Of a stretch of DNA of 64,000 nt, positions 3,333 to 64,000 are shown one piece after another. Below the pieces are notes generated by a model. It was not told the DNA's origin. It was given only the letters and a program-made list of their open reading frames with translations, and searched no databases. A program made the translations under genes and the position numbers. Within the stretch, counting starts at the first letter, position 1. Every line of letters starts with the position of its first letter. Source of the DNA: Lytechinus pictus (Eukaryota); NCBI RefSeq assembly GCF_037042905.1, contig NC_087261.1:10478001-10542000 (forward strand), given 5' to 3'.

Positions 3333-4004
3333 TGATTTTGATTCGGGATTTAGTTAGCACTTGATATTGATTTTGATTCGGGATTTGGTTAGCACTTATT
3401 ATTATTGATTTTGATTCGGGATTTAGTTAGCACTTAATATTGTTGACTTTGATTCGGGATTTAGTTAGTAATTGATATTGTTGATTTTGATTCGGGATTT
3501 AGTTAGCACTTGATATTATTGATTCTGATTCGGGATTTAGTTAGCACTTAATATTATTGATTTTGATTCGGGATTAAGTTAGCACTTAATATCATTGATT
3601 TTGATTCGGGATTAGGTTAGCACTTGATATTATTGATTTTGATTCGGGGTTTGGTTAGTAATTAATATTATTGATTTTGATTCGGGATTTAGTTAGCACT
3701 TAATATTATTGATTTTGATTCGGGATTTAGTTAGCACTTAATATTATTGATTTTGATTCGGGATTTGGTTAGCACTTAATATTATTGATTTTGATTCGGG
3801 ATTTAGTTAGTACTTAATATTGTTGATTTTGATTCGGGATTTGGTTAGCACTTGATATTATTGATTTTGATTCGGGATTTAGTTAGCACTTAATATTGTT
3901 GATTTTGATTCGGGATTTGGTTAGTAATTTACATTATTGATTTTGATTCGGGATTTAGTTAGTACTTAATATTGATTTTGATTCGGGATTTGGTTAGTAC
4001 TTAA
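3333..4004. repeat. ~41-bp minisatellite, ~16 copies
   Basis: Tandem units of consensus TTGATTTTGATTCGGGATTTAGTTAGCACTTAATATTA with few substitutions. Confidence 0.95.
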
Positions 4005-8100: not shown

Positions 8101-11100
8101 ATGGCTTCCTCGACGATGACCACCGTATCTTCAGTACTCTTCATCGTAACCTTCGCTGTCCTCATCGCCGGCGTCCCCGGTGACCACCACACCGGCCGAT
8201 ACTGCGCAGTCCGCGGATGCTGTAACGTAACCGGCGCCACCGTCATCAGCGATGCAGTGGCTAAGACTGGGGTTTTTAGAAACGACAAGTGCCACGCACC
8301 TTTTCCAACCAGCAGCCCGACGACGCTCTGCTACTGCGACGGGTTCTGTCAGAGAAACGACCCCGACTGTTGTCCGGACTTCTACGAGGTGTGCCTTGGT
8401 CGAAAGCCTCCACCAGATGTACTTGAGTCTCGAAAGACAGGTATATCCACTCCAAAATTTGTTTGTATTGAAACTTGGCTACATTGCACTTGTCAGGGTA
8501 AAATTTAGATATATCTCCCAGACATACAAGTATGAAATCAGTTATCCAGCGCCTTGTTACATAAATGGTTCATTTAACTTTCCCATTTGTTTTAATTTAT
8601 ATGTTGGAAATCTTGATTCTGATGAAGTTGATTGACTGTAACTGGGTCAGAATGATGATAGTCCCTATTTATGGAATTGTGAATTTTTGCCACTTTGCGA
8701 AATTGATACCCCCCAAAAAAAAAATACACAACAGTAAATCGCACATCTACTATTTGGATTCACACCACCAACATACAACAATCAACACGTTCGAATATCC
8801 GTATATTATCGAAGATAATACTCTCTAAAACATATCTTCTTAAAGACATGCTTCCTTAGGAATTGTCTTTAACTCATACTTATATTTCGTAACCAAGAGT
8901 AAACATGCGAAGACTAATTTTTATCTGATCTGTGCATTTAAATATCGTAGACGAAGTTGAATTACTATGCTGCCACGAAGAAAGAGAATACCAAGTAGGA
9001 GAAGTTCTAAGGATAAACTGTAATACTTGGTGAGTATATTATCAAAAATACTTTTCCAGTTCTGTAAAAGTTCTAAAATATTGCTGTTACAACATCTTGA
9101 ACATGGTGAATGAAGAGTCAATAACTATAACCATCGACTGATCACGTAGAAAATGGTTAATAATATTCTCGCATTTGAAACATTATTAACATGTTCATTC
9201 ATATACCCTTGCTTCGTGAAGTAACTCTTCAACAATGGCACACTTTTGACATCATAATCTATTCGTATCCTGGTTATTGTTGAAGAGTTGATTAGAACTC
9301 TCGTCATCTTTTTGAAGAACGTCGAGTACAATTATACCTTTCCACTTCATATCACTAGTTTGTCCTCACGAGTAAACGCCCTTGTCATGCTCCGTCGATA
9401 TATCAATAGTAAACTGTTGGGATCCACAACTTGTGAAGACGGAGAAGACATTTGATGACGATTTATTTTGATCCTGCAACCACTTGCTAATGATTTATAC
9501 CCGTTTTCACAAATGTTTCAAAGATTATTGTATCGTACGAAGTATGGTGTATGACGTATGTATAACATGGTGGTTCTTTTTTGTCTCTGAATGTTTTAAA
9601 TCGCCGATTGATAGGTCGATATGTTTGTTCACCTATCGTTTAGTTAGTTGTTGATGCCTATGAAAACAATGGATAGGCGTTTTTTTTTCAACATGTTGAT
9701 ATTCGTTATATTTTACTTTCCGACACCTTTTCAAGTTTTTGAAATATGAACAATTAATTTTAAAAATGTATTATTAAGAAGCTGCCCTAAAATTATTCAT
9801 GTGTCCATTTAGTAAATTGCCCAATATGTTTATTCGGGTGACCAAAACATGGACCAGTATTCCGGCAGCGCATTGTAATCGCAAGGACGGGGGCGCTATT
9901 TATCAAAATAATTTTCATTTTAGAGTAGTTAGCAAACTTTTCATTGAATTGTCTTCTATTCAACAGTACATGTAAGCCTGTGCTCTATGAATTCGCTACA
10001 TTCGTCTGTGAAAAGAGGGATTGTGCCATCAACCAGGAGGCAGTAGATGAAATCAACGATGGTAACTTCGGGTAAGTAGACCAACACACCTGATACTACT
10101 GTCATCATGTTTTTGTAAATTTGAATACTTTAAGTTAATTTATTTCATTATTGATGATTTACGAACTGAGGCTCAGGACATCTTCACCGCTTTTATTACG
10201 AGAGTTTTTGATGTAAGAAAGAAAATTGCATTTCGGTTACAAGTGACAACAGGTTGTTAGGACTTTTGGTGGCAGGAGTGGGATGATAATGTACGGTTTT
10301 AAAGATGGAGGCCTACGGGAGCAACATCTATATCGCTGAACAAAATGCTGCTACTAATACTGGCTGTAATGTAATACATAAAGACTCAAGATTGTAGGAT
10401 AGTACGATGGTAAGCCTTTCTTTGGTAAAGCATTGGTTCCCTTGCAATGACTAATGATATTGTCTTCGATGTCCAGGTGGTCAGCGGGTAACCAGACCGA
10501 GTTCTGGGGCTCCTCCAAGGACGACGCGATGCACTATAGGTTGGGCACCATGAAACCAACCGCTGCCGTCCTGAACATGCACCAGATACAGAATGACATG
10601 CCACCCGAAGACATCCCCGATGAGTTTGACGCAAGGCTCCACTGGCCAGGGCTCATCGAAGACGTACAGAACCAGGGCAACTGCGCCAGCTCCTGGGCAA
10701 TGTCAACAGCAGGTAAATCCAAATTTCTTATTCCGCTCACGATGGACGATGCAGCAAACTTCCCAGGTCGGGCAGGATGGGGGTAAACACAGACTTGTAT
10801 GCAAGTAATTTTCTTGCAAGTCCAACATTTGTCCAGGTTTAAAATCTCCACTGGCACCTTCACTCTCTATTTCTTTTACATCGTGGTTTCGTGACTACAA
10901 ACCTTTTAGGAGAATGAAATAAGAGGCTTATTTTGTGATTTAGTGATGGTTAATTACTTTTTTTTTAATTCTAGTTTATAGTCTTATCAGCAAATGTAAC
11001 ACTGTGTTCTCAATGTGAATATTATTTCACATGGTGAAATGAATAATAAACAAATGATGTGGATGATTGCGATTCAATTGTTTTGTATCCTGCTTCCAAC

Positions 11101-14100
11101 AGCTACTGCTTCGGATCGCTTAGCCATCCAGTCCAATGGCACATTCAAATACATGCACCTGTCACCTCAACATCTACTATCGTGTAATGTTAAGAGACAG
11201 CAGGGATGCACGGGAGGGCATCTAGACAGGGCCTGGTGGTATATGAGGAAAAGGGGGTAAGTACTGGACGTTGGTGCAATATGATGACGATGGTGATGAT
11301 GATGATGGTGGTGATGGTGGTGATGATGAAGATAATGAGGATGAAAATGATGACGATGGAGATGATGGTGGTGATAATGATTGATGATGATGATGTTGTT
11401 GTTGTTGATGATGATGATGATGTTGATGATGATGACTATGACGACGAACGAGAGTGTTCTTGGTGGGATAAGGATAATTGCCATGAAGTGCGACTTGATG
11501 GTGGTAAAACGGTTGCTGATGCCTGATGGTGACGATCAGTGATGATGATGAAAACACTGGTGATGATGATGATGATGCTAATTGTTTTTGTGATGATAAT
11601 GATGACGATGATTTTAGTGATGCTGGTGGTTGTGATAGTGATGATGGAGCTGATGGTGATGGTGATGATGGTCATAGTGGTGTTTATTAGGGTGTTGCTG
11701 ATGATGATGGCGATGGTAAGGATAACTGATGAGAATAGGTGTGGAAATGTCCTAGATTGGCCAACCTCAAGACGAGGATACTGATGACACTTTTAATAGG
11801 TGTTACTGGAGATAAATTATGCTAATGAAAATGACGAAGATTCGACTCGTTTTAATTCACTTCGCGTGAACATATTACTATCGTCAAATTGTGCAACCTG
11901 TTTGTTGTAATATCATTTCAGTATTATCAACCACATCATCGTTTGTATATATATGTTTTCTAAAACCTAAAGGTTAGCTCAATTCGAATTTAACAATTAT
12001 AACTTGCAACATATTTTCATACTTATTCAAATATTTATCTTTCTTCTCCAGTGATTTTTGAACTGCACTGTAATTTTCAACCACGAATTTTTTTTTCGTT
12101 GTAGACTGCATTCGTAGTGACAACTGACCAGTCTCGTATCGCTGTCACGTTATTAACCTCAATTTCATTCCCTTATTTTCCGATTGAAACATTTCCCCCT
12201 TTTCTTTGCAGAATTGTAACGGAGGACTGTTACCCGTACCTTAGCGGGATGACGTCAGATATGCAAATGAGGAAGGGTAACTGTTACATCAAAGGTCGCG
12301 ATCGTGTGCCTCCGTATTGTCCGAATCCAACAGTTAGAAGTCAAAGATATATGTCGACACCGCCATACAGGATAGCACAAGATGTGAGTTGTGGATTTTT
12401 TCAAAATTCATATTCAAATACATTTGGACATGAAAAAATATGGTACCAGTATTCAGGAGCGAGGTATTGCGCATGCGTCAGACGTATACATTCTTTTGAA
12501 TTGATTTGCGTATGGCATATCGGTATGGCAGATGACAAGAGTCTAGTTTTGTTGTGATTTGTATAAAGTGAAGATTTATACAAATCATAGTGACTTGTAG
12601 CATATCTAGGGAGGGTAAGGAGTGACCGAGTGCATAGGATTTCATTTTTATTGATTATTTATTTCTTAAATTTATTTCATTTTCAAAATCGATCTTGGCG
12701 GGGTAGGGACAAAAGCTAATTTAAAACAAATCTTTACTGAATTTGATGGAAGACCAATAAAGAAACACGCAGATAGCGTTTCTCCAGGCGTCAGAATGGA
12801 TGACAATTTCATCATTTCTTCAAAACTTTTTCCCAAGATACGCCACTTGCGTCAATATGATTGACGCATCTTGCACAAGGGAAGAAATGTCAGTACCAAT
12901 ATATCATTTTCCATCTGTGCAAAAAAAACTTTACAATAATATTTTTGTTATTATTATGCTCCCTGCTTCAACACGTTCACCACGCCAGTAATCGCATCCA
13001 CGCCTTAATTTTGATAAAAACAATACCAAAATCAGACTCTTGTCTTTTGATATATCGTGAAATCCGATATCGTAGTAAACAAATTAATTCATAAGTATGC
13101 CAGTGTATAGATTTTAATAGATGTCACACACGATTCCCATCATCGTGTTTAGTTAGATTTTTAATCGTTTTGACAGGAAACTTTGCAGTTTTTACCCTAA
13201 TGTCATCTTAAATTGTTCCTCGCCTTTGTCAGTTATTTCAAATATTTGTTACTCGTATTTCCTAGTTTCAATGAACACCAAAAATTCTTGATTTCCTGAT
13301 TGCTTGAATTGACCTCTGACTGAAAAAGTTTTGTTCGTAGTCCCACAAGTAGGGAAGCGTGTCATATTGAACATGGCCTTGTGTCAAATCACGATTTCAC
13401 CCCCAGTGAAGAGTACGCTATAACACATCTTTGTCATTTTTTGAAACACCTTTCTCTTTTGAATATATAGAGTTGATTTTTGAATTTTGCTATTTTTCCA
13501 ACTCTTGGCTTCAGATGAAAATAAAGTAAATATTAAAGGCCTACCTCTCCTCGAGCTATGCTTAAACACGACACAATAAATGCAAACGTAGACTAAGACT
13601 ATTTGATATTTCTAAAGTGACAAGATCGACATGGTAGGAGCTAACACCTCGCCACTACAACCAGAAAATACCCCGTATACCAAATACCACTGGCGTAATG
13701 AGCCCCCTAAAACTGAGGGGCCCAAGTGTAGCGGATGGAGTAATGATTGTTAAACGATGCGTTCGATCGAATCGAGTGGGCAAATGAAGAATGATATTTT
13801 TTATATAAAGGTATAATTTTTGGTTAGATTTGGACATAATATAATGCTTTATTCTTTTCCCTTTCATTTCCTGTCTTTTTCTCCCTTTTTCTTAATCGTG
13901 AAACATTTTTTAAGGGCGCATGCCCCCAAGCCCCGCTCCTGTCCCTTTTGTACACCATCGCAATGAACCAATCATCATCGGCACTTTCTCGCTTCCTGGA
14001 TAAGCATAAGTCACGTTCAAAAGCGATAAAAGTGGAGAAAGATTTCCTTTTGGAAATGCGAGAGCGAAGGCCTTGTCGGGATACATGAACACGTGGAACA

Positions 14101-17100
14101 CATTTACGGGGTCCGAAGTTCAAGAGCACCATTGTTTTCTTTGAAATTAAATAATTTAGATATAACTTTCAAGGTGCAGAACTGTGTTTTGTGGAAGTGT
14201 TCTAGCATCAATTGAGCATCTCGGATGATAATTGGATTTTCAAGTTTGAATTAGAGCTTGGTTTTAGATCCTGTACTTGTCCTACAAAACCAAATCAATT
14301 ACAGGCCGGTTCAGGGAAAGTATCTTCAATCCGGTCTACTGGTGTGAGCTGCACAGCATCAAAACTTTTACAAAAGGCGTTAACAAAATTAATTCATTTA
14401 CTTTTCAACATCAAAATGTTTATCGATATACTTCCATATCTGCATGGACGAATGAACCTCTTTTTTATTCTTATTTAGTGTTATCATCTTTTTATCGGAA
14501 TATGATAAATTGCGTACGAATCTAACAAAACAGGCCTATAAGTGGATTTTTGCTCGATCATTTCGGTCACTCGAAAATTTCCAGAAATTACATAGTGTAT
14601 ATCCAAAACTTCAACACTCTCGCAAGTTGTTTTTTCGCTCTGCTCTTGTTCATGGGGGGGGGGGGGTTTGGAGGGTGACAAATTTGTCAATGTAATTGAA
14701 AGTTACCATATTCACTGCTGTCATATTTTATTAACAAAGTTAAATGTTCAATGATACAAACCATGAAAACTAAAAAAAAAAAAAAAGTACTGGTAAACAT
14801 CATGTGTCCATGTTTGTTGTTTCTATACTTCGACCACAACCATACCCCACTTGATGCATATATCAAAGTCATGCTTTGTGATGATAGTAATTCTACTGGA
14901 CACACAACACCGCAGGTGTCCAAATAGTTTCGATCATAGACCCGTATAATGACGTCATCGCGTAGCATAGTCGTCTCTGTCACTTGCTTTAAACTATTAT
15001 TATATTTATAATATATTTATTTCTCGCATTCAGCGGGGATTCCCTGTAGTAAATAATACACAAATCACATCAAGATATATGTCAATTTCAATGCAATGAT
15101 TTTACGAAAAGAATCGCGAAAGCGAAAGCCCTCCAACTTCCCCCATCCTGTCCAAAGTCGTGTCTGAATTTGACTAATTATGGCGTGAATAAATTAGAAA
15201 TGTTATAAAAATTTAAATTTCTATGGGAGCAAGGTAGATATTGATATTAATACATCGATGAATTTTCAACAATTTAATATTTGGAACACTTCAGAAAAAA
15301 CCTACAACATGACCTGAGTGCCAAATAGGGACTGCTTCACCTCGACTTGTAGTCATGATAAAAAGAAAATTGCTTCAAAAGTTCTTAAAAGTTGAAACAT
15401 CTAGGAAACTCCATCTTGAAAGGCTCAAGATTAATTGCATCAACGCATTCAGGGGCATTTCGAGCAGAATATTTTGAAAAATTAAGAGTGAAAATGATTT
15501 TGACTTGGTTTAAATTCGCCGCATGACGCCCCTCCTTCGTTGCTTTTACACTGATTGCAATTTACACTCGTGTCAATTTCTAGGGTGGAGTTAGTTTCGA
15601 GGAATTACATTCCAGCATGTTTTAATGATATTGTTGTATTCGAAGATGTTGTGTTGGATAAATTTAGTAAATGTTCCAACTGAGCTTGTTTGATGAATAT
15701 TTGGGTGCTAAGTATCGCTTGTGATTAGATGAAAGCGGAGTGAATACTCACTTTGAACATGCCTCACTATCATGGCTATCAGGAATATACACTCTAAAAA
15801 TAAATCAGTCAAAAATGACTAATTAATAGGGTCAGCTGCACAGCAAAAACTGCGGTGTTAACCGGTGTACATAGATGACCACACCAGTGATTTTACACCG
15901 GTGTTAAATTGACAGTGTTAGTTTAGCACCTATAGGTGTTATTGCAACACCTTTGGTTGTTACATGTACACTCTTTGGTGTTATATTCAATCTCTAGGGT
16001 GTAATTTTAACACCAGAGGGTGTGGTCCTCTATTAACACCCACTGGTGTCAGTTCTAACACCACAGTTTTTACAGTGTGGGTGCAACTATTATTCTACTC
16101 ATATTTTACTATTTTCTAGTCGTATTTTACTAGAACAGAGTTATTTCTAACTAGAATATGTCAGAAATGTGACTAGTATCAGTTGCCCCCAGCTGACTAC
16201 TTGTCCAGTCAAACGATGTTACAGGGTGCTTCAAACAAAAGTCCGATGTGATCGTGAGTGGATATCAAACAGATTATGAGTGACCATGTTTTAAGCACTT
16301 ATTTTCATATCATATGTTCCTTCGTTTCATATTAAATTATTTGCAATCAATCAGAAAACATTTCTTAGAAACAAAACTTCAATGCACGTCGTTTTCTGCG
16401 GGCACGGCCGTTTTTATTCCTTACTTCTGCTTTTATACACAGTGTATTTTTTTCCAAACCAGAAATAAATTCGTATCTTTGTTTTTTGTTTTTTCGTTCT
16501 ACAGGAGCAGCAGATTAAGGCAGAAATATTCACAAACGGGCCTGTACAAGGTATAGTTGCAATCTTTGATAAATTTATTAATGAGAAACAACATTAACAT
16601 GATTAATAAACATTGAATAGCCCCACTCTTGCAAGATATGCTCATGATAATGATAATACACGTATAAATTTTCTACAGTACGATTCAAAGAAGTCGCTCA
16701 GTGCGGATGTTTTCTGCCAGTTAATCATACTTAGTCATTATCATGATAATAATTTTGCTATTTTTCGTTTGATATTAAGCAACAAAATACATAAAAAGAT
16801 GAAAAAGCGATTACAATGTAACGAAACTAAAATTATTTGAATCTCATGTTTTCCCTCCAGCCGTTTTCAACGTCAAAAGCGACTTCTTCATGTACAAGGG
16901 CGGCGTGTATCGCCACATTCCGATGAAGTCGACTGCGTCTAATGTAGTCTTCACCGGAGACCAGACTGATGTCCAAGGTGACGGAGTGTTTGAGGAAGAG
17001 CAGGGCGGTTGGCACTCGGTTCGCATCCTAGGATGGGGTGTCGATAGGTCGTACCCAAATAGACCACTCAAATATTGGGTAAGAAATCACGGTTTGAGTA

Positions 17101-18727
17101 ACAAGCTTGACCGAAATATATATACATTTTCTATCATGTCTATTATAGGTCTTGGCGTTGTGTAGGTTATGATATACAGACGACCACGTTACCATGGTTA
17201 CTTAAAGGACAAGTCCACTCTAATAAAAAGTTAATTTGAAACAAAAGAGAAAATCCAACAAGCATAACACTGAAAATTTCATCAAAATCGGATGTAAAAT
17301 AAGAAAGTTATGACATTTTATAGTTTCGCTTAATTTCACAAAACAGTTATCATTTCTAATAGGTCTATGGTTATAGGCACATCTTGGTCGGTATGCAAAT
17401 GAGGAGACTGATGACGCCATCCACTCACTATTTCTTTTGTATTTTATTATATGAATTATGAAATATTCTAATTTTCTCCTCATAGTCAAGTGAAACAACG
17501 ATAATTCCTCCCTGAACATATGGAATTAGCATTGTTTAATTCTATATGGTTCAGTCAAGTTGGTCCACATTGTCAAATTTGTAAAAAAAATGAAATATTG
17601 TTTAATTCAAACAATAAAAAACAAAAGAAATAGTGAGTGAGGGACATCATCGACTGTCTCATTTGCATGTCACTGAATTGTGAAAAATAAGCGAAACTTT
17701 AAAATGTCATAACGCTCTTATTTTACATCCGATATTGATGAAATTTTCAGTGTTATGCTAGTTTGATTTTTCTCTATTTATTCAAATCAACATTTTCTTG
17801 TGGTGGACTTGACCTTTAAGACTGAGAATCATTGTCACTTTGCAATTAATGGTAATGACCATGGTAACAATGCTGGGCAACCCATTAAAATTAAGATTCC
17901 GTTGATTACAAATATTGATATTATAATAAGTTGTATTCAACCTAATTTGGTTTCGGGTGAATATGCCCCGTTGTCAGAAAGACATTTCATCGAAATAAAA
18001 ACAGGAATTCCGAATAAACTGCAATTATGCCTATAGTTTATTATTAGGTCACTATATATCCTGGATATTACATGAAAAAAAAAAACATTCGACATACGTT
18101 GACATCCATCTCAAAACTATTTGAAATATTCTTGAAAAAAAAAGTGATATTTATATGAAGATTAGGGGTGGTTATAATGTTCTAGTATACAAATAATACA
18201 CGATATCGAGGGCATTAGAAGAATTACACCATGAAATGCCTTCAGAAAAGTTTAATTGGATATGATCAATATCATCACTTTATGATATGTTATACAGTAT
18301 TATGGTTATCTATTTAGCTGTACTTTCGATATCAAATAAATGGTATTTCTCGTCAGCTTGAATATCGACTGCTAAGATTATTATTTTTTTTTTTTGGGGG
18401 GGGGGTATTAAGAGGCTGTTATTTGATAATTACTTCAATTCTTTACATATACAATAGAAAATAATATAGCAAATGAATATTATCTCTTTACAAATTAAGA
18501 GATACATTGAAAACTCCTAAACTTAACACTATACATTATTTGTTTTATTTATCGATTGCCCCTTCTAGATATGTGCCAACTCTTGGGGTACCGGATGGGG
18601 TGAAGATGGTCTCTTCCGGGTCATCCGAGGTGAAAACGAATGCAGTATCGAGAAGTTCGTCGTGGGAGTCTGGGCGAATATTGACACTGATATGATGAAC
18701 CCCATGAAAACGAACAACGTCATATAG
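8101..18727 (+). CDS. TINAGL1: Tubulointerstitial nephritis antigen-like protein (TINAG/TINAGL1 family; signal peptide + somatomedin-B + Cys-rich + non-catalytic papain C1A domain), 502 aa
   Basis: Coding exons 8101-8440, 8951-9029, 9967-10071, 10477-10712, 11103-11256, 12212-12383, 16505-16550, 16861-17078, 18569-18727. All introns GT-AG with consistent phases (1,2,2,1,2,0,1,0); total 1509 nt. Motifs: CYCDGFC..DCCPDF (SMB), [41 protein letters not shown] (catalytic Cys replaced by Ser), [65 protein letters not shown]. An acceptor at 8027-8028 implies an upstream 5'UTR exon. Confidence 0.93.
11280..11730. repeat. degenerate (GAT/GGT)n microsatellite in TINAG intron 5
   Basis: Visible trinucleotide run; produces the poly-M/D/H ORFs in the track. 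Confidence 0.9.
15790..16228. mobile_element. CMC/EnSpm-like MITE with nested CAC..GTG MITE (15839-16077)
   Basis: Outer CACTCTAAAA..AGGGTG; inner CACAGCAAAAACTG / CAGTTTTTACAGTG flanked by a 2-bp TG duplication. Confidence 0.55.
17206..17815. mobile_element. Kolobok-type MITE, copy 2 (TINAG intron 8)
   Basis: TTAA TSD; TIR AGGACAAGTCCAC / GTGGACTTGACCT; collinear with 4005-4594. Confidence 0.8.
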
Positions 18728-20825
18728 ACGTCGCATAAACGTTATACAAACGTTGTGATCCAGGATTCTTCGAAAATGTGATAAACCTTTTATATCGTTG
18801 TTCAGACTGAGAGGCTGAAAGAGATTATGGTAAACTACAGATTTCAGGCCAAATTTTCGACGTTATCCACCTAAGACTGATCATTGCTTAGCATCGATCG
18901 ATAACTGGCTTTAAAAAGATGAATTTGGGGGAAATGTTGGAGTCATGCGGATTTATGACGTTTTCTTCGCTTGGACCCTATATTTTGTTGGACAATGGGT
19001 GCTCGATTTTTGCAAAAAAAAAGTCTAAGTAAAACAATATCTATGGATTGGTGCAGGTCAATGCTGCCTCTGCCATGTTTATCACAAGTAATCCGAGAAT
19101 AGACGTACCGATGTGATGAAATGGGACTGATGAATCAGAGCCTATCCGAGGGATTTACAGGAAGAGTGAAGTGTAACAGTCTAACAGACTTCAAAAGAAG
19201 CAACAGCGCACCTTCTCCACATGATCCCCATTTTGTGACGAGGCATAATGCAAGGAGTGAAAAAAATGCTTCAAGTAAAGTCACTATATATTGTGTAACA
19301 TGGGTGTCGAAACACGGCATTTGCCGCCACGCCGGAGGTGCAACCTTAGTCCTATTATCAGAATGATAGTAATAAACAAAGGACAAAACACGGTTTTCTC
19401 GACGTATATATGTGTGATTTAACGACGATAGCTGCATTTATAAGCAATCAAAAAGTTTCATTTATTTCATGAAACTTCACGTGCTAAATCAGAGTTATAT
19501 ATATATCATACAGACCAATTTTCATATTGAAAAATAAACAGGATGAAGACGATATTTCATCATAAAATGAAACAATGATTCAATAACTTTATGACATTTT
19601 AGTTCTCATGTGACTTGCATAAGGTAATGGTTTAACCAAATATTGAGTTGTTATAACGATTATAACGTTACATACATACATATCATTCTGTTTACGACAC
19701 TTTCCTTCTGTGATAGTCTCCGTATACGTAATTATTGTGTTCTGACCTTTATATGATTCGTATAATTCTAATACATTTTGCAAAGAGTAATGGTTAAATT
19801 AAATATTGAGTTATAATTATCATATGAAGTTACTCTCACTGACGGTGCCATTAACTGATTATGTTAGGATCTAAATTTGGCATGTAAAACCGAAACCATT
19901 TATCGAGAGGGTCATAATGGTCTAAAGAACAAACGAATCGTGTAGGCGTCTTTTTCTTAAATAGAGTTTTCAAGCTCTTGAACTTAAGAAGTTGAACATT
20001 TGAAGAGATATTACGTGAGTCACAATGAAATGACTGATTGTTAATTATATTATTTAATTGATACGAGGCTTCCCAAACCCACCATCCCCTATCATTATCT
20101 ATAGGCCTACCACCCAAACCTTTGACCCATTTTCATACCTGTCTTTCTACCAAGGTGACTAGGAATGTTATTTCTCAAATTAAACTGTAAATAATTTCTG
20201 AAAAGTTTTATACAGTGGATTAAGTTACTCACTGCGGCATATTTTTGTCGATGGTATTTATAGATAGGTAAACGTTGTTTGAATGTATGTATTTTTTTTT
20301 CCATATTTATATGTGTTGATAAAATGAGTATTGTGTTTCAATAGGTATTTTAGCTCAATCACGACTTTTGAAACTTAAATGGAGTTCAGTATTTTGATTG
20401 TCAACATCATGTCAAAGCGAATATGGACTTTAGGCAGATTCTATATCGGCGACTTCAGGGGCCGCGGAACCGGGGGGGGGGGGCGTGTGCAAGAATGTAA
20501 AAATTACCATCTGATTGTGATTTTATGCATGGTCAACCCCATCCCCTTCAAATTCATTCCGCGGCTCTGGACTTAAAATCAGAGAGTAACGAATGGACTC
20601 AAAGAGTGTCGAACTCAAATCGGAGAGTATCGGCTTGAACACAGAGAATAATGACTTGAAACAAAAATTATCGAATTAAATTACTACAGAGTATCTCCTT
20701 AAGACAGAGCGTTACGACTTGACGCAGATGGTATCGACTTGACGTAGAGAGTGCCGACTTGAACGCAGAAAGTCTCAACGACTTCAAAATATAAATCAGA
20801 CAGTATCGACTTAAGGCAGAGAGTA

Positions 20826-48328: not shown

Positions 48329-49169
48329 AAAAAGAAAAAAATATGTGAATGGGGGCGAATTGTTTGATGGGAGACATGTTGATCTTAACATAAATACAAT
48401 CAGGTATACTGTAAACAATGTTGATCATCAGTGAAAAAAGAGAATTCAGCAATGTTTCATCATGAAACACTTGCTGGCCCCTAAAGAAAAGATTATCCAT
48501 TATAAATAATAGAAAAGATTTTTTTTTTTAGGGGGCCTTGTATTCAGAAGTTGGATTCCTTTACTCTTCGTCTCAATCCTAAGATGAAAGAAGTCTTGGT
48601 ACATGAGGACCAGATATTTTTACAGAATATGTAAACACATTTCTGAAACTAAAACAAGAATTAAGTGGTTGGTCTGCAAACTGCAAACCTCATGGTATTT
48701 GTTGGAATGTTGGGATGCAAATAGCTTACAGGATATGATCATTTTCTTTACAAATTGATTGCCTTTAATGTACAATAGAACTTTTTTAGTAATTATATAA
48801 TGCCAGTGTGTTATGTAACTTTTGTAAATCATGTGTTATCGACATTTGGATGTGATAGGCTCTTGGCCATGATGATCAATAAACACCACGTGTAACCTTA
48901 ACTCTATCTGAAAATTGCCTTTATTGCTATTATTGTCTTTGCACAAAACCTTTTCTCCTGTCAAAATAGGACACAAGAAGCCTCCAGACTTTCGACTCTT
49001 CTATAGGGTTTAAAAAAAACTGAAGGCATTCGTTATGATGAGTCAAATTGAGATGTTTTTCTTACGAGGAATGTGTCTACAGCTTTTTGGAACGAATACT
49101 GCTCTCTCCTGGGACACATGGCTGTATACATTCATCAAGCCGATACCATGCCCTGTCGTATCTTACTCA

Positions 49170-52100
49170 TTACTCCTTGATCTTGATGATGCAAAACTTG
49201 TTCCTGATGTCTTGGGCGGGGTCAATCTTTGAGAGGATGATGAACTGGAAGTTACATGTGACGTGAGGTAAGAACTTGTCCTTCTCGTAATCTGGTCCAT
49301 CCGCATCAGTGATAAGGTACTCGTACCTGCATAATAAATAGAGATTGATGTATGTTTAAAACATTAATAAATGAAAAGTAAATTCAAAATGATTGTTTTT
49401 TTTTTAGTTTATTTTATGCTGATAAATGACAACAAGAAAAAAACAATCATGCAAAAATCAGGAAAAGCATCCCTTTTTTGGCACCTGGGTATAATTATAA
49501 TCAATTAACGGGATTTCATTATATATCAATTGGGCAGTTTAAACACTTCCATTTATACTGGAAGTGAGAAACTTCAATTGTAAAGCTTACTTTTTAAATA
49601 AAAGCAGGGATACAAAAGAAGCAATATGATACAGTATTAAACATTTATAGTATTCTAGCACATGGTCAAACAGAAAGAGACTGGACCAAGACTAGCTCAT
49701 TACGATACAAACAGAATAATGCATCTAAATGGGTTTTTTACAAACTTGCTGTATAATTTAAATGAACGATGTTGGCATCAGGTTCACAACAGAACAAACA
49801 AACCCATAGGTAGCACTTTTTATTTAGAAAAATTTGAAAAAAAATATACTCACTTCTCAAGTATTGATTTGTCCAAGACATCATTCATGAGATCTTTGTG
49901 GATTTCTTCAAACCTATCTCTGCACGAGTTGAACATATCAGAGCCCCCAAAGTCGATGGTGAAATTATTGCCATATCTGTGGAGAATATATCGAGAAAAT
50001 AGACAATGAACCAATTTCAAACAATGATGAGAACAAGCCATGTGTGCCAAATGAACTATCTATACTAGGTCCTTATTCTTTCTTGCATGAGCCACCATAT
50101 GCATAATCAGGAGGGATGTAATTAAAAATATGAAAAAATTAAACCATTTACAATTCACATGACTGCAAAAGGTGGTAAAGTCAGTTTCCTGTATATAATC
50201 ATGCGACTTGAAAACACAATTTGCATCACTTGAAGTCCGCTCCAACTCTGTCTGTGTTCAGTCTATGCAACATACAACATAAACTAAAGAAATATGTTTA
50301 AAACTTTACATAGGATGCCTATTCAACAACAAGTGGAACGCCTCTGGCAGTCTCGCCTGCATTACGCAATGCGATATAGCAGCAGTGCTTCCTTTGAAAA
50401 TATCTAATGAATGTTATTCACAGAATAAAACACTAATATGATAATAAAATATTATGTCCATTGACCCAAAATGACCTTTGACCATGATCATGTGACCTAA
50501 GACATGTGCAAAACAATCATTCATACTTGATTATCCTTATGTCGATGTTTCATGAGCTAGATCCATAAACTTCCTTAGTTATGATGCCAATTGATTCAAC
50601 ACATACTCCCAACACGGCCAGAGTTCATTGACCTTTAAATGACCTTTGATCTTGGCCATGTTCCTGAAATGCACACAGGATATTCAGGGATACATTGCTG
50701 CTCTTATGTCCAAGTTTCATGAACTAGATCCATTGACTTTTAAAGTTATGATGACAATTCCACAAATACCCCCATCATTACCAAAGTTTGTTGACCCTAA
50801 ATGACCTTTGACCTTGGTCATGTGACCTGAAACTCGCACAGGATGTTCAAGGATACTTGATTGCTCTTATGTCCACATTTCATGAACTAGATCCATAAAA
50901 TTTCAAGGTTATGATGACAATTCCTCAAATAACCCAAACATGGCCAAAGTTTGTTGACCCTAAGTTACCTTTGACCTTGGTCATGTGACCTGAAACTCGC
51001 ACATGATATTCAGGGATACAGAGTTGCTCTTATGACCAAGTTTCATAAACTAGATCCATAAAATTTCAAAGTTATGATGACAATTCCTCAAATAACCCTA
51101 ATATGGCCAAAGTTCGTTGACCGTGAGTGACCTTTGACCTTAATCATGTGACCAGAAACTCAGGCAGGATCTTCAGTGATACACTATTAACCTTAGATCT
51201 ACGTTTTATGAACTAGGTCCATATACTTTTGAAGTTATGACAACATTTCAAAAACTTAACCTTGGTTAGGATTTCGATATTGATTCCCCCAACATGGTCC
51301 AAGTTCATTGACCCTAAATGACCTTTGACCTTAGTCATGTGACCTGAAACTCAGACAGGATGTTCAGTAATACTTGATTAGCCTTATGGCCAAGTTTCAT
51401 GAACTAGGTTCATATACTTTCTAAGTTATGATGACATTTCAAAAACTTAACCTTGGTTAAGATTTCAATGTTGACGACGCCGCCGCCGTCGCCAAAGCGG
51501 CGCCTATAGTCTCGCTCTGCTATGCAGGAGAGACAAAAATTACATTCACTTCATTGATGATCTTTTCATTTATTCATCAGCATATTAAAAATTGTAATTT
51601 TGAAGATAAATGAAAGTAGTTGCATTATAAACACTGACTTTAAGTTTAATGGCAAGAAAATTATGTAAAACCAAGGATTAATTGTCTGATGTCACTGGGA
51701 CCCACTGTATATAGTATTATGGTATAACTTCCCTGAAATCCTTGATTTTGATTGGCTGCTGCAGCTGCACATCGTTACTAATGATTAATTGTTACCATTG
51801 TAGCTAATACCATTGGAGTTCAAAGTTACCATAAATTAAAGTAACATTTATGCAATGGGAACCTGGTACAGAACTTTACATCAGGGCGCTGTGAACAATT
51901 GTTTTACACAGGGTTGATGATTTAAATTTGGCAAGCAAAAGACAGATAAATTTGACAAGCAAAAAAAATAAAAACTGTTTCACAACAAAATGCGGGAGGC
52001 TTCAGCCCCCCACTTTTTTCCAAAACCGTGTAAAAAACGTAAAAATGACCATGTGATTGTGATTTTTTGCATGGTCAGCCTCCCCCCACTTTTGGCTCAG

Positions 52101-53935
52101 CCCCCTATGAAAACGGTTCCGCCGCCCCGTATTTCAGAGCTGAGGTATATGTAGGCCTACTTCGGGGCCCCGATTTAGAGTTACGATTGATCCTCTTTGT
52201 AAGACGGGGCCCGGAAAACAAACAAACGGTTTCGGCAACCTCCCCGATGATTGTCTTTCCCATGACCCCCCCCCCCATGATATTCAAGAAGTGGTTTTAA
52301 AAAAGAGAGGAAGGGGGGAGAGAAAACGTGAAATGAGAGTGCAGGGGCCTGGAAACGATTTTTGAAGAGGTCGGGGTGCTTGTTTAGAAACATAAAAAAA
52401 GTTAAATGCATGCAATAAAAATCTTAAGCACACATCCGTCAAGCTTACCAGCTAATTGGTTTTTCGTTGTTGGTTTTTTTATTTTATCTATAGGTCTATG
52501 TTTTTGTTTTGTTTCATCGTAAATACTTTCCCCTCTCTATGCAACCCATTTGTACATTTTCTAAGAAAAGGCGCTCATTTTATTATTCAGCACCCCGCTT
52601 CCCAGGTCCGCGAAGGAGGGGAAATTTTAAGACCAGTCGTTGGTTGATTGTGCAGCTCCCTCACCCCAGTAATTTAATACTAAACGTCTTTCCCCCTGTC
52701 ATAAAAGGCCGCGCCCCTATACACCCACCTGACAGGTACCTTATACCGGTAACCCCATACCAACATGTATATTTTTTCGAAGAGAAACCAAGTTTCTGTT
52801 CCCTTCTGCATAAACACAACACCAAACAAACAGATAATAAAGATACACAAAGAGGGCTACCCCGGGGGGCTACAAACCTTATTGATCCAATAAGACGTTT
52901 CCTTATCGTTTCTGCTTGCATGTCCGACGGAGAGATGGCGTCCAAACAATTACCTCCTTGGTAACGAAGAAATACCGCTGCTCTCCCGCCGCTATCGACG
53001 ATCATCGGCCATTTCCCTGTCGACTTGATCTTCCCGTCATCATCCTTGAGTACGTCCGAGAGATCTTTGAGTTCGATCTCGATGATGACCGGCTTGGGCT
53101 GTTCGTCAGTGGTTGACATCTTGGCTAGCTTGTCAGTCACATCTACAAGACGACAACATATCAAAGGATGAATTTATTTCAGTTAATATTGTCCACTATA
53201 GTGTAAATAGTGAGAAAAGATATAGGGAAAAAATGTGAAATAAAAGATTTTTTTGTATTTTACTATACTAAAAGCCTGGATCTAGGCATTGACGTAAAAT
53301 ATAAGCCTGACGTCTGGATTGTCATGAAGAAGCGACACTAATTTTCTCAATTAAGGCACATTTTCAAATAATCACGAAAATTCCAGACATAACCAAGGAT
53401 ACAAATAAATTTGCAAATGTATCAACATTTTTCAAGAGGCCTAATTTAATATGATGAAAACAATATATGCTTATATATACTCAAAACTATTAATTACTTA
53501 TAGGCCTTTAGGGGACTTAAATATTGAGAACACTGAGAAATCAATAACATCGTCATATGGCGATGTGGGTTCAAACAAAAACAAATAAGGTTCCAAATTA
53601 AATAAAGCCGTCAGCCTTATAATATTACATTACTCAACAAAAATGACTTTTCCCAACTTTTCGCTATAGTATTAAGGAAACGCCCATGTCATGAGTAGCA
53701 TATTTCAATTAGCAAGAAAAATAGGAAAACAATCAGGAATATTCAGAATCAGATTATTTCCTCAACATGAAGAAAAGATCTAGTCTATACGATAAGTTTT
53801 ACCTTTTGCATCCTTGCTTGATGTGGCGCCTTTCTTTTGAGATGAAACTGGAGTTGTTTTTCTGCCGCCATTTGCACCGGTCTTCTTTGCGGGAGTTGCT
53901 TTCTTCGGGACCGCTGTTGGTTTCTTTGGAGGCAT
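49170..53935 (-). CDS. short IQANK1 paralogue (Lys-rich N-terminus + IQANK1 C-terminal domain; no IQ or ankyrin), 225 aa
   Basis: Exons 53935-53803, 53142-52878, 49976-49854, 49326-49170; GT-AG, phases 1,2,2; 678 nt open. MPPKKPTAVPKKATPAKK..; GKWPMIVDSGGRAAVFLRYQ..LIGSIRYG..; same intron positions as the neighbouring IQANK1-like exons; AATAAA on the minus strand at ~48920. Confidence 0.82.
50328..51538. mobile_element. non-autonomous Helentron/HINE-like element, copy 1 (~6 x 163-bp repeats)
   Basis: AACAAG start, subterminal inverted repeat GTCTCGCCTGCAT / ATGCAGGAGAGAC, terminal hairpin, internal tandem repeats, A-rich insertion site without TSD. Confidence 0.7.
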
Positions 53936-54513
53936 TTCGTCGAATGCAAGTGGGCGTTAATTGGTGGTTACAAATTAAAGAGTTGTTCTAGCTAACTTGT
54001 GTTTCATGATTTACACCAGTTGAACTTCATTTTCTCATGTTCTCTGAATTATGTGTTGGCCAAGTATTACCAGGTGGGTATATATATATACTTACGCGGG
54101 GTGGGTATATGTGTACTGTACAAATGCGGCAAAAACACTGTATCTGCATCGTTACTGCAAACAAACTCGTGCTACAGGTGGGTACGGTGCGCGCCAATCA
54201 TAATCCAAAAGATACCTTCTTTTATTGTTACGTCATCTTGGCCCGATCGATTGTTATCAAGCGGGTTTCAATAGAATGGAGCCCGACCTCAGAGTATGGG
54301 GAAGCTGTATTGTTACGTTGTAAATATACTTTTAAGCTCGTTTGAATATTTTTTTTGTTGTTCAACCTTTCCTTTCATTCCGCTTCTTATCTTTTCGGCG
54401 CAAGGGTCCCTAATAATCCTATTCTCTCCTTCTATATCTTTAATGTTTATTCGATCGTTTCAGTTGTCTCGTCTATCCATTGATGCCCACTGTCAAATTG
54501 ATGTTGATGGCAG

Positions 54514-60080: not shown

Positions 60081-63000
60081 TCAACCTAGTACTACCCTGA
60101 GTACATAGAACCTCTCCATTATCGCGTCATCCAGTTCATTCTTCGAGACTAGGAGCATCTTGAAGTTCTGGACCCTGTTCTGCATGAATTTGTTCTTGTT
60201 GTATTCCTCACCATCGCTGTCTCTCACAAGGTATAGATATCTGAAGAAAAAAATACAGATGAATATGTGGGACCTCTTGGGAACACTGATATCTGCTCTA
60301 TTTAGGGTGCAAACAGGCATAATATTCCCCTCTGAAAAATAGCCAAGGGTCGCTAAGTCACCACCGAGGTCCGAGGCGCCCCGGTTGGGGATACAAGCTC
60401 TTGCATAGTAAAGAAATCGAAAGTGATTTTTAAAGGTGAGTCTGCATGATAGGTTTACCATTTCACTTAAAAAAGCAGTAAAAAACAGCATGAGAATGTT
60501 CTTGGGCAAAGGATTTCACATTAAAAAAAAATCTGAAAAAAATTATTTTAAATATCGGAATTCTGTTTTTAGTGGGGAGAATATCATGCCTGGGTGCAAA
60601 TAAGACATGTTTTGCATCTATGGTATGGGAAAAATAATGCTTTGAGTTTGGCGATTATTACGAAGACTCCGCTGCATTAGTAAGGTTGGTCAAGATAATG
60701 GGGCAAACTATCACTAGCAAGGCATTGTAGATATTAATGAAATGATTACAATTAGTGAAAGTGATGTATCTAATTACCATTTCGTTTCTTTGGATCTGGC
60801 CATCTTTCCAAAGCTAATCTAGGGGGAAGCTGGCAATTCATATATTGCAAAGGAAGTGATAGTTTGTCTCATTAACACTGGTAAAAATAATAATTGTACA
60901 TTTATATTGCGCAATTACTACTCAACTGTACTGCCTACAGGCGCTCTGGCATTCAAGGAATTTTTTCCTACTGGGTACCCATTCACCTCACCTTGGTTGA
61001 GTGCAGAACAAAATTTGGGTAAATTTCTTGCTGAAGGAAAACATGCCATGGCTGGGAATCGAACACACATCCCTCAGATTGAAAGACAAGAGTCAAAACC
61101 ACTACACCACGATGTACCCATTCACTGAAACCAGTCCAAGGCTTCATATTCTTTTGATTCAAATTTAAAGTTTTTTTTCTGAAAAGCTTCCGTTTGAATA
61201 CTTGTTGGATAAAACGAGATTGGACTCTATGTGGAATAAAATACTCACTTTTCATTCTCTAGTATACTCTTATTAAGGATGTCTTCTAGCAGTCCTGGCT
61301 GAACTTCATCAAACCTTGAAACACACGTCTCAAACATGTCCACCTCCAGGAAATCAAGCACAAACGGTTTGCCATACCTGAGAAAGGATGCAAAAACATG
61401 TAAAGTGGAAATATGTCACCATGAAAAATGATTTATTTCTATTAAGTGGAGTGTTTAGACAAGAAGAATATACCAATGACAACAGGAGTTTGGATTGAGA
61501 ATAATGCTGGAAGTTATTCTAAATTTTGTGCAGTAGTTCAGTCAAATTATTTCAATGTTTTACTAAACAGTCCAGTTGTGGAAAGAATAAAACAAAAATT
61601 AATTCATAGTCTAACAGAATGACCACCCAGTCGATCAATTGTGGGCCAGAGTTCTGGGGGGAAAGAATATCTTTCTAGTATGTGACAAAATACCATGACA
61701 TTCTTTATGTAAAGATCTAATAAAGTAAGAGAGAGAGAATGAAAAAGGAAGAGAGAGGAAGAATGAGGGATAGAAAGAGAATTATGGCCAGAGTAAGAAA
61801 GGTAGAAATGGAAGGGGCAGGGGGGGGGGGAGAAAGAAAATACGGGCAACCCCTTCCCAAATATCAATACGTAATAACAAACAAGTGGAACGCCTCTGGC
61901 AGTCTCGCCTGCATTACGCAATTCGATATACATGTAGCAGCAGTGCTGACTTTGAAAACAGCTATTAAATAATCATTCACAAAAGAATACTATGTCCATT
62001 GACCCAAGATGACCTTTGACCATGATCATGTGACCTAAGACATGTGCAAAACAATCATTTATACTTGATTACCCTTATGTCTATGTTTCATGAACTACAT
62101 GTGTAGAGCCATACACTTTCTAAGTTATAAAGCAAATTCAACATATACCCCCAACACGGCCAAAGTTCATTGACCCTAAATGACCTTTGATATTGGTCAT
62201 GTGACCAAACAAGCACAATATATTCAGGGATACATGGGTACTCTAATGTCCCAAGTTTCATGAACTAGATCTATATACTTTAAAGTTATGATAATTCCAC
62301 CAATTTGGCAATACCCCCACATTATCAAAGTTCGTTGACCCTAAATGACATTTGACCTAGATCATGTGATATGAAACTTGCACAAGATGTTCAGGGATAC
62401 TTCATTGCTCTTACGTCTAAGTTTCATGAACTAGATCCATAAAATGTCAAAGTTATGATGACAATTCCTCAAATACCCCCAACATGGTCAAAGTTCATTG
62501 ACCCTAAGTGACCTTTGACCTTGGTCATGTGATCTGAAACTCAGGTAGGATCTTCAGTTATACACTATCACTCTTATGTCTAAGTTTCATGAACTAGGTC
62601 CATATACCTTAGAAGTTATGACGACATTTCAAAAACTTAACCTTGGTTAAGATTTCGATATTGATTCCCCCAACATGGTCTAAGTTCATTGACCCTAAAT
62701 GACCTTTGACCTTGGTCATGTGACCTGAAACTCAGACAGGATCTTCAGTAATACCTGATTACCCTTATGTCCAAGTTTCATGAACTAGGTCCATATACTT
62801 TCTAAGTTATGACATTTCAAAACTTTAACCTTGGTTAAGATTTCAATGTTGACGACGCCGCCGTCTATAGTCTCGCTCTGCTATGCAGGCGAGACAAAAA
62901 TAATAATGAAAAACAACCACTTAACATACCTTATGGCTCCTAACACAGCACACCTTATAACCTCTGGCTGCATATGATTTGGGTTGAGGGCGTTGATGAA

Positions 63001-63155
63001 GTTAGTGTCCTGATAACGGAGAAACGTTGATGCTCTCCCTGAGTTGTCAAGGAGCATCGGCCAGCGACCATCGGATTTGATCTTTCCTCCCACGTCTCTT
63101 AATAACACATCATTCAGCTCCTTGAAGTTCACCTTTACACCTACCTCATCTTCCC
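60081..63155 (-). CDS. IQANK1: IQ motif and ankyrin repeat domain-containing protein 1-like, last three coding exons (5' part beyond the window)
   Basis: Exons 63155-62930, 61377-61249, 60240-60081 (TGA); phases 1,2,2. ELNDVLLRDVGGKIKSDGRWPMLLDNSGRASTFLRYQDTNFINALNP..AVLGAIRYGKPFVLD..YLYLVRDSDGEEY..F matches the IQANK1 C-terminal domain as I recall it. Confidence 0.8.
60884..61119 (-). mobile_element. tRNA-derived SINE (intronic)
   Basis: Minus strand: box A TGGTGTAGTGG, box B GTTCGATTC, body AATGGGTACCCAGTAGG..TTCCTTGAATGC shared with the SINE at 21223. Confidence 0.75.
61880..62898. mobile_element. non-autonomous Helentron/HINE-like element, copy 3 (~5 x 163-bp repeats)
   Basis: Same termini, subTIR GTCTCGCCTGCAT / ATGCAGGCGAGAC, same repeat unit. 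Confidence 0.7.
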
Positions 63156-64000
63156 CTGAGAGAAAAAAATGATTTTGTGATTAGTTGATAATACAAATTT
63201 TCATGAACTTGTTTTTGAAAATAAAACATATAATTTTCAGATAAATCTCATTTATATCCTCTGGATGTCTATAGCGTGTCTTTATGCATCACTCAATTTT
63301 CCTGAGAGGCCTAATGCAATTGTGAATAATCTAAATTTGTACATTTGAAGGTTTCATTGGAAACTGTCTTCTTGAAGTTTGCCTAATTGAGACTTGTCTG
63401 ATCAAAGTTTGACTAATTGAAGAGTGACACATTCCAGAGATTTAATACCGGGTAATTAAAGATTGATTTATTTAAGAAATCATTATTTGATGGTAGGCGA
63501 ATCTGATATTGACTCATTAAATACTAATCAACACATTTTTGACTAATTAGAGATTTATCAACAGAAAATTTTGTAATTAATTGAAGGTATATATATTCAA
63601 AGGCATAGGCTAATATTATTGATGTCTAATTTTAAAGAAAATACTGAACTTTAATTCATGTTGATTTTAATACTGTGCATGCATGTGGATGAAAAAAAAA
63701 CACCCTGGAAGAAAACAAAAATCAAATTCGTGCAGACACTTTCAAGATATCCGCGCCTGAAAATCAATTACTAAATCTCCTCAGGAAATTAATATAATGC
63801 ATGTTAGTGTGTGGGACTAAATTAAGATGATGTTTCTGGACACTTTTTTCAAGCACTAAATAATGATTTTTGGGTGCGACTTTCTCTGGGCATCATTTTT
63901 ATATCATATCACAGACACAGGTGATAGGAGGGACCTTGCAGCTCAGACTTTCTGTAGAGTCAAATCAATGTTTGGCAATGCTGTTTAAGTTTAAAAGTGA

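Follow-up and report, generated by a model that had tools for sequence, protein, structure and literature searches.

The 64,000 nucleotides (nt) of Lytechinus pictus DNA analysed here (contig NC_087261.1, positions 10,478,001 to 10,542,000 of the forward strand; hereafter the window, whose numbering we use) hold on their minus strand a four-exon gene that lies downstream of a long IQANK1-like gene and codes for a protein of 225 residues. Our data show that this short gene is an independent, transcribed protein-coding gene with a start of its own. Its sequence conservation supports purifying selection and a C-terminal domain that works without the IQ/ankyrin/coiled-coil middle of the long form. 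It is the urchin orthologue of a widespread, little-studied family of short IQANK1-like proteins, in which a basic tail sits directly on a domain that is, as modelled, a degenerate and nucleotide-blind AAA+ large subdomain closest to dynein AAA5. Our overall reading, to which we assign a probability of roughly 0.6, is a separate short IQANK1-like gene whose product, a basic tail plus an AAA5-like domain, would work as a non-catalytic cilium or dynein adaptor.

A first-pass annotation of this DNA had proposed an intact gene of four exons and 225 residues about 6 kb downstream of the IQANK1-like gene, and this has been borne out. The four minus-strand exons (Table 1) join to 678 nt, made up of 225 codons and a TAA stop (49172-49170), the introns, in phases 1, 2 and 2, all have GT-AG borders, and 6.1 kb separate the stop of the long gene (60081) from the ATG of the short one (53935). 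Exon 1 is 133 nt long (44 codons and 1 nt) and opens with MPPKKPTAVPKK; that this Lys/Pro/Ala-rich exon of 44 codons is spliced in phase 1 onto the domain exons, as had been predicted, is seen at junction 53803^53142 in raw reads as well as in an assembled RNA contig. The latter, 1069 nt in length, covers 49022-49324, 49852-49976, 52878-53142 and 53803-54138 and so reproduces all three junctions for which an RNA check had been suggested (53803^53142, 52878^49976, 49854^49326). It further carries about 200 nt of contiguous 5' untranslated region (UTR), and a stop codon stands in frame 7 codons 5' of the short-gene ATG. In two stranded raw-read RNA runs, 10 and 11 reads cross junction 53803^53142, all with the first mate on the plus strand, which is the orientation expected of minus-strand RNA in usual stranded libraries. 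Read depth is 2-13 over exons, 0 in introns outside repeats and 0 above 54113, and transcription of the short gene probably starts near 54140; at the 3' side, depth stays at 5-13 down to about 48794 and then drops to 0.5-1.9. The L. pictus protein model held in nr (206 residues) is a read-through of intron 2, with an odd C-terminus that matches the translation of the start of that intron (52878-52600). RNA backs the spliced 225-residue product over this model, and the database protein model for L. pictus is thereby corrected.

The search for orthologues in other echinoderms that the first-pass annotation had recommended found them in L. variegatus, S. purpuratus and Diadema setosum; these urchin proteins are 221-228 residues long and share 96%, 80% and 56% identity, respectively, with the L. 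pictus product. With coding sequences taken from the genomic loci, the ratio of nonsynonymous to synonymous substitution rates (dN/dS) against S. purpuratus is 0.114 overall, and thus not near 1, with 0.053 in the domain, 0.37 in the tail and a dS of 0.94, pairs more distant than this one being saturated at silent sites. The reading frame is intact in four urchin species, Diadema among them. As for the earlier proposal of an uncharacterised orphan domain acting as a stand-alone module, the stand-alone part holds, on the strength of RNA, dN/dS and loci where the short gene occurs solo; the orphan part does not, as shown next.

The domain itself comprises about 165 residues of mixed alpha/beta structure and is acidic, with an isoelectric point (pI) of 5.0. 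An AlphaFold2 model, built on the L. variegatus orthologue (96% identical to the window's own product) with 125 aligned relatives, reaches a predicted local distance difference test (pLDDT) score of 97-98 over residues 61-225 and leaves the tail disordered (pLDDT 54-76). When this model was submitted to Foldseek, a check that had been proposed for the domain, nearly all of the top 50 Protein Data Bank (PDB) matches were dynein heavy chains, with E values from 8e-4. Alignment by VIA-align to the AAA5 module of human dynein-1 (DYNC1H1, 3519-3703) gave Z 9.5-9.7 and a root-mean-square deviation of 3.1-3.4 A at 17-18% identity over 117-120 residues, identity to dynein AAA1 and AAA6 being weaker. 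An exhaustive search independent of Foldseek again placed dynein first, followed by Rea1/midasin, CbbQ, NorQ, Vps4 and many AAA+ ATPases; dynein fragments in the Atlas had TM scores of 0.42-0.44 to the domain. At the level of sequence, 105 of 125 family members have a match at E <= 1 (best E 3.3e-11) to Pfam AAA_9 (PF12781), which covers AAA5 of dynein, and ten single relatives, short and long, score 17-26 bits against it (E 6e-6 to 3e-3); for the family as a whole, the sequence kinship is significant. An RNase III match (E 0.05) from a profile search of the PDB was dismissed as noise.

What the domain shares with AAA5 of the dynein heavy chain is the common alpha/beta AAA+ fold and, at the first strand, a W/Y-P-L-x-I-D-x-x-G-x-A motif with a degenerate P-loop; unlike AAA5, it is free-standing rather than part of a six-module ring and has neither lid nor buttress. 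A Walker A motif (GxxxxGK[ST]) is absent, the loop after strand 89-93 reading D-S-G-G-R-A-A and the family consensus being IDxSGxAxTF with no Lys-Ser/Thr. Walker B (hhhhDE) is likewise absent, strand 137-141 ending in a conserved D141 that is followed by Phe and not by Glu. There is no helical lid subdomain, the L. variegatus model ending at residue 225 with a strand. Since Walker A Lys, Walker B Glu and lid are all missing, the domain should be a binding module, not an ATPase. MoxR-type AAA+ proteins (CbbQ, NorQ) and midasin/Rea1 have an equal large-subdomain fold (Z 7.7-9.0), but these are active ATPases with Walker A/B motifs and lids, and they match at only 8-15% identity and not at sequence level.

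The basic tail takes up the first 57 or so residues, has a pI of 10.3 and consists to 77% of K/P/A/G/S/T (range 77-93%). Its Met-Pro-Pro-Lys start is kept from animals to protists and in short as well as long forms; in an alignment of 24 short proteins, M1 and K4 are conserved in at least 90% and P2 and P3 in at least 70%. The alpha-N-methyltransferase NTMT1 recognises the motif M-(A/S/P)-P-K, with RB and RPL12 as Pro-Pro-Lys examples. The MPPK start of the short protein fits this motif, so that the tail may possibly be alpha-N-methylated, a prediction from sequence; its likeness to NTMT1/NRMT substrates (RCC1, RB, RPL12) is one of motif only. The tail of one family member matches Pfam HC2, a histone H1-like nucleoprotein family. 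At 53894 in exon 1, one same-species RNA contig has an in-frame insertion of 24 nt that duplicates a PKK-type tail unit; because it is also in the L. pictus nr protein and is lacking in raw reads of two other runs (0/9 and 0/4), tail length is polymorphic.

In a whole-genome search the domain is present in two copies only, one in the short gene and one in the long gene next to it. Querying the window with the short product (tblastn) retrieves the paralogous exons at 63144-62926, 61382-61257 and 60242-60093 with 51, 50 and 32% identity, and the short domain is 44% identical to the long C-terminus over 162 positions. Splice positions and phases are equal in both genes (phase-1 entry, then AG/R-Y in phase 2 and AA/K-Y in phase 2), the two phase-2 introns splitting an Arg codon and a Lys codon in either case. 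Accordingly, the earlier description of three last exons that agree with the long gene in intron positions and phases while diverging in sequence stands, and both peptides quoted for it are present. The window ends at 64000, short of most of the long gene (its first, IQ and ankyrin exons); this part was mapped on the adjoining 30 kb, for which we carry the window numbering past 64000 as extended coordinates. Exons at about 70811-64020 (extended) match the ankyrin region of the Mytilus IQANK1 protein, a canonical IQ exon (IQIQKWVRRFL) stands near extended 72204, and the first exon starts at extended 74549, reads MPPKGKPVPK... and ends in a phase-1 donor. A basic MPPK first exon is thus common to both genes, and joining the first exon of the long gene to its last three gives the layout of the short one, the intervening block being bounded by phase-1 introns on both sides. 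Its removal or insertion therefore preserves the frame. The likeness to the IQANK1 long form extends to the MPPK first exon with its phase-1 donor, the C-terminal domain and the intron positions therein; the difference lies in the IQ motif, ankyrin repeats and coiled-coil middle that the short protein lacks (225 as opposed to about 580 residues). Consistent with this, Pfam finds neither IQ nor Ank in the 225-residue product, and long forms match Ank/Ank_2 at E 1e-10 to 1e-20. In Mytilus, the long gene is laid out in the same way, with 14 exons, of which the first (124 nt) ends in phase 1, and a phase-1 intron precedes the last four (103, 135, 129 and 172 nt).

Table 1. Features of the short gene and exons of the neighbouring long IQANK1-like gene within the window.
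Feature	Position	Strand	Remarks
Short gene, 5' UTR	53936..54138	-	RNA contig continuous from exon 1 to 54138
Short gene, exon 1	53803..53935	-	ATG; 44 codons, Lys/Pro/Ala-rich disordered tail (MPPKK...); phase-1 donor
Short gene, exon 2	52878..53142	-	end of tail and first half of AAA5-like domain; contains GKWPMIVDSGGRAAVFLRYQ
Short gene, exon 3	49854..49976	-	middle of domain; RNA contig piece 49852-49976 joined to 52878
Short gene, exon 4	49170..49326	-	end of domain and TAA stop; RNA contig piece 49022-49324 joined to 49852
Short gene, 3' UTR	48900..49169	-	AATAAA at 48925-48920; read depth profile
Long gene, third-last exon	62930..63155	-	first half of AAA5-like domain; phase-1 acceptor
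Long gene, second-last exon	61249..61377	-	tblastn match and reading of borders
Long gene, last exon	60081..60240	-	with stop codon

A profile of the domain retrieves 599 proteins at E <= 0.001, which fall into two length classes, one of about 205-240 residues with the domain starting at around residue 45-70 and one of about 550-620 residues with the domain at the terminus; many members of both start with MPPK. Long IQANK1 proteins (Mytilus, a mammal, Volvox) come up at E 1e-30 to 1e-49, the short domain being 45% identical to the Mytilus long form. Besides other urchins, the animals with short forms are Glandiceps, Amphiura, Branchiostoma, Gigantopelta, Plakobranchus, Haliotis, Mizuhopecten, Solemya, Mya, Lineus and Lingula, so that a hemichordate, amphioxus, molluscs, a nemertean and a brachiopod are all represented. 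Similar proteins are found in protists, the short-form Atlas clusters having Mollusca, Oomycota, Ciliophora and Chordata as their commonest known phyla. Long forms were seen in Mytilus, a mammal, Syssomonas, Volvox, Guillardia, the chytrid Polychytrium and diplonemids, and the diplonemid Lacrimia has both. A word-indexed protein search with a 24-sequence profile gave 16 hits, was saturated by low-complexity words and says little about vertebrates. The L. pictus gene has the features of the short family throughout, namely a length of about 205-240 residues, a basic, disordered MPPK tail directly on the domain and a first exon ending in phase 1, as judged by the alignment of 24 short proteins, gene structures in five species and modelled disorder over residues 1-60. 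RefSeq and nr already hold such short forms (about 205-230 residues) as automatic "IQANK1-like" models; those of L. variegatus, S. purpuratus, Diadema, Glandiceps, Branchiostoma, Haliotis and others are orthologues of equal architecture (56-96% identity among urchins), yet they are predicted only and are named for domains they lack.

Where the neighbourhood of the short gene could be compared, S. purpuratus and Diadema resemble the L. pictus window in that the long gene immediately precedes the short one on the same strand, and in Glandiceps short and long genes stand head-to-head, 1.8 kb apart; linkage of the two dates at least to the ambulacrarian ancestor. Within 10 kb of the short gene, amphioxus and Gigantopelta have no long gene. 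Being unlinked there and head-to-head in Glandiceps, the short gene is a unit of its own. So what had been taken for a local partial duplicate does lie next to its long paralogue, but represents a widespread family found far beyond this locus. Downstream of the short gene, S. purpuratus (at 4 kb) and Gigantopelta each have a Peptidase_C1 gene in tail-to-tail arrangement. The window has a counterpart in papain-like Peptidase_C1 exons at 13286-18729 (+), some 30 kb from the short gene, and this gap includes a Polinton-like element at about 40 kb, as called in the first-pass annotation. With papain-like proteases being numerous, we regard this urchin-gastropod microsynteny as suggestive, and orthology of the peptidase genes as a candidate.

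Two smaller observations concern the locus itself. The 5' UTR has three short upstream ATGs (53950-54030), each closed by a stop ahead of the main ATG. Intron 2 holds, at 50461-51474, a tandem array of about five copies of 163-191-nt units that are 79-83% alike and heavily represented in the RNA runs, mostly in one orientation; as many of these reads continue into unlike sequence, the signal is attributable to other genomic copies of a dispersed repeat.

Could the four exons be something less than a gene, or a gene younger than its family suggests? That they serve the upstream IQANK1-like gene as alternative 3' exons, an option raised at the outset, is not supported by our data and seems to us very unlikely. 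They do lie on the same strand, 6 kb downstream and with matching intron phases, and the junctions listed are the best-supported joints among reads examined up to about 54300, with long-gene transcripts outside this range, which leaves room for rare chimeras. Against this speak the RNA contig with its own contiguous 5' UTR and in-frame stop, the junctions onto exon 2 (10 and 11 reads), which among those listed come from exon 1 only, zero depth above 54113, and orthologues that have no linkage to the long gene in amphioxus and Gigantopelta and an inverted orientation in Glandiceps. Even less credible, indeed next to untenable, is a decaying, functionless partial duplicate that happens to be transcribed: nothing except an origin as a partial copy argues for it, and a frame kept open in four urchins including Diadema, a domain dN/dS of 0.05 and canonical splicing all argue against it. 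More weight, though still well short of an even chance, goes to the view that the short form arose or was re-made recently, in echinoderms or ambulacrarians, from the neighbouring long gene, with short forms elsewhere being independent exon-loss derivatives, or that an older split was obscured as the tandem copies underwent gene conversion.

As to age, five exons (133-139, 94-106, 135, 129 and 160-163 nt) make up the short gene in Glandiceps, amphioxus and Gigantopelta, and these, first exon aside, mirror the last four of the Mytilus long gene. The recurrence of this architecture and of these exon sizes (about 133, 100, 135, 129 and 160 nt) in three phyla speaks against a recent origin, as do the tail-to-tail Peptidase_C1 neighbours downstream of the short gene in S. 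purpuratus and a gastropod. Both urchin paralogues lack the intron before KWP that the Mytilus long gene and all three of these short genes possess. This counts for a recent origin; its cause could be loss in parallel or an old conversion event between the two tandem genes, and with these only 44% identical, any such conversion must be ancient. In a careful tree of 55 domain rows, metazoan short and long forms form one unresolved cluster, and a grouping of urchin short with urchin long genes is not rejected under an approximately unbiased (AU) test (p 0.257); both results count for a recent origin. On the other side, the free tree groups urchin short genes with other short forms, and the "short" label requires 3 changes compared with 18 in shuffles. 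Separate short and long clades, as obtained in a fast tree, were dropped when a constrained search gave a tree better by 84 log-likelihood units. In Amphiura filiformis, a short protein of 224 residues has a domain nearer to the long forms in both trees and may represent either a model of an isoform with skipped exons or a short form derived independently. This protein, together with a middle block bounded by phase-1 introns that would make repeated in-frame loss easy, agrees with a recent or repeated origin. Based on architecture, exon sizes and distribution, we favour a single old origin of the short form, which the domain tree does not settle. The same goes for the earlier notion of a copy that lost its middle and kept an open frame: the frame is intact, whereas loss as opposed to gain of the middle, and its date, are not settled by that tree.

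What, then, might the short protein do? Judged by the kinship of its domain and the taxa that carry it, it is probably a non-catalytic adaptor in cilia or with dynein-related machinery. Its basic tail would hold on to an acidic partner, with tubulin tails and nucleic acid as examples, and the protein would share partners at both ends with the long form while doing without the IQ and ankyrin inputs. The calmodulin-independent competitor put forward in the first-pass annotation stands as a hypothesis. In Glandiceps, a perfect palindromic X-box, GTTACCATGGTAAC, is found at 9740-9753 of the locus, within the 1.8-kb promoter shared by both genes and 261 nt before the short ATG, where about 0.01 such sites are expected by chance in a 1.8-kb stretch. 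A second perfect RFX X-box, GTAGCCAACGGCAAC, lies in intron 1 of the urchin long gene, some 55 nt from the start of that intron (10552363-10552377; extended 74363-74377) and hence outside the window. A ciliary setting gains support from both X-boxes, the urchin one being at the 5' end of its gene. Several points weigh against an adaptor in cilia or with dynein. When the promoters of urchin short genes were scanned, no RFX X-box was matched, and none lies in the 800 nt that precede the ATG of the short gene described here. Every named taxon of the family builds cilia or flagella at some stage, a profile that rests on those taxa which carry names. The window protein alone scores 11.8 bits against AAA_9 (E 0.12, residues 83-140), which is below the 27.4-bit cut-off, and the profile search of PDB sequences gave nothing significant, dynein at E 0.3 being a lead and no more. 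In the literature on IQANK1, taken alone or with cilia terms, we found genome-wide association studies and expression lists only and no paper on function; nor did any paper come up that deals with the short form or relates the domain to dynein AAA5.

Finally, an H1-like basic tail with a methylatable N-terminus fits a role in chromatin equally well. The corresponding alternative sees the short protein as a nuclear or chromatin factor, whose H1-like Lys/Ala/Pro tail and alpha-N-methylated Pro-Pro-Lys start would bind DNA in the way of RCC1 and CENP-B. It draws on the tail's pI of 10.3 and its 77-93% of K/P/A/G/S/T, on the HC2 match of one member and on a conserved MPPK start that fits the established NTMT1 motif. 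We nonetheless consider it unlikely, as the folded domain is related to dynein AAA5 and not to a DNA-binding fold, all named taxa are flagellated or ciliated, and perfect X-boxes occur both in the promoter that the two Glandiceps genes share and at the 5' end of the long gene in the urchin. Our preference stays with the non-catalytic adaptor in cilia or with dynein-related machinery. A bolder version of it, quite improbable by our own estimate, is that the IQANK1 family has carried a free-standing large subdomain of dynein AAA5 since early eukaryotes, which would attach to dynein motors or to proteins that partner them, perhaps through mimicry of, or contact with, the AAA5 surface used by the linker and neighbouring modules. 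The short form would then be a minimal regulator, made of a methylated basic anchor and an AAA5 mimic, to which the long form adds calcium/calmodulin and ankyrin inputs. If true, a free-standing AAA5 copy docking on dynein would represent a new class of dynein or ciliary regulators.

IQANK1 is a named yet functionally blank gene family of animals, humans among them, and the locus described here shows it in two conserved forms. Shared by both are the basic N-terminal exon and the C-terminal domain, and the strongly constrained short form shows that the domain can work alone. Together with the standing of the domain as a degenerate relative of dynein AAA5, this offers a testable lead, which points to cilia or dynein and to a binding rather than an ATPase role, and for which the small urchin protein provides a convenient experimental handle in sperm and embryonic cilia.

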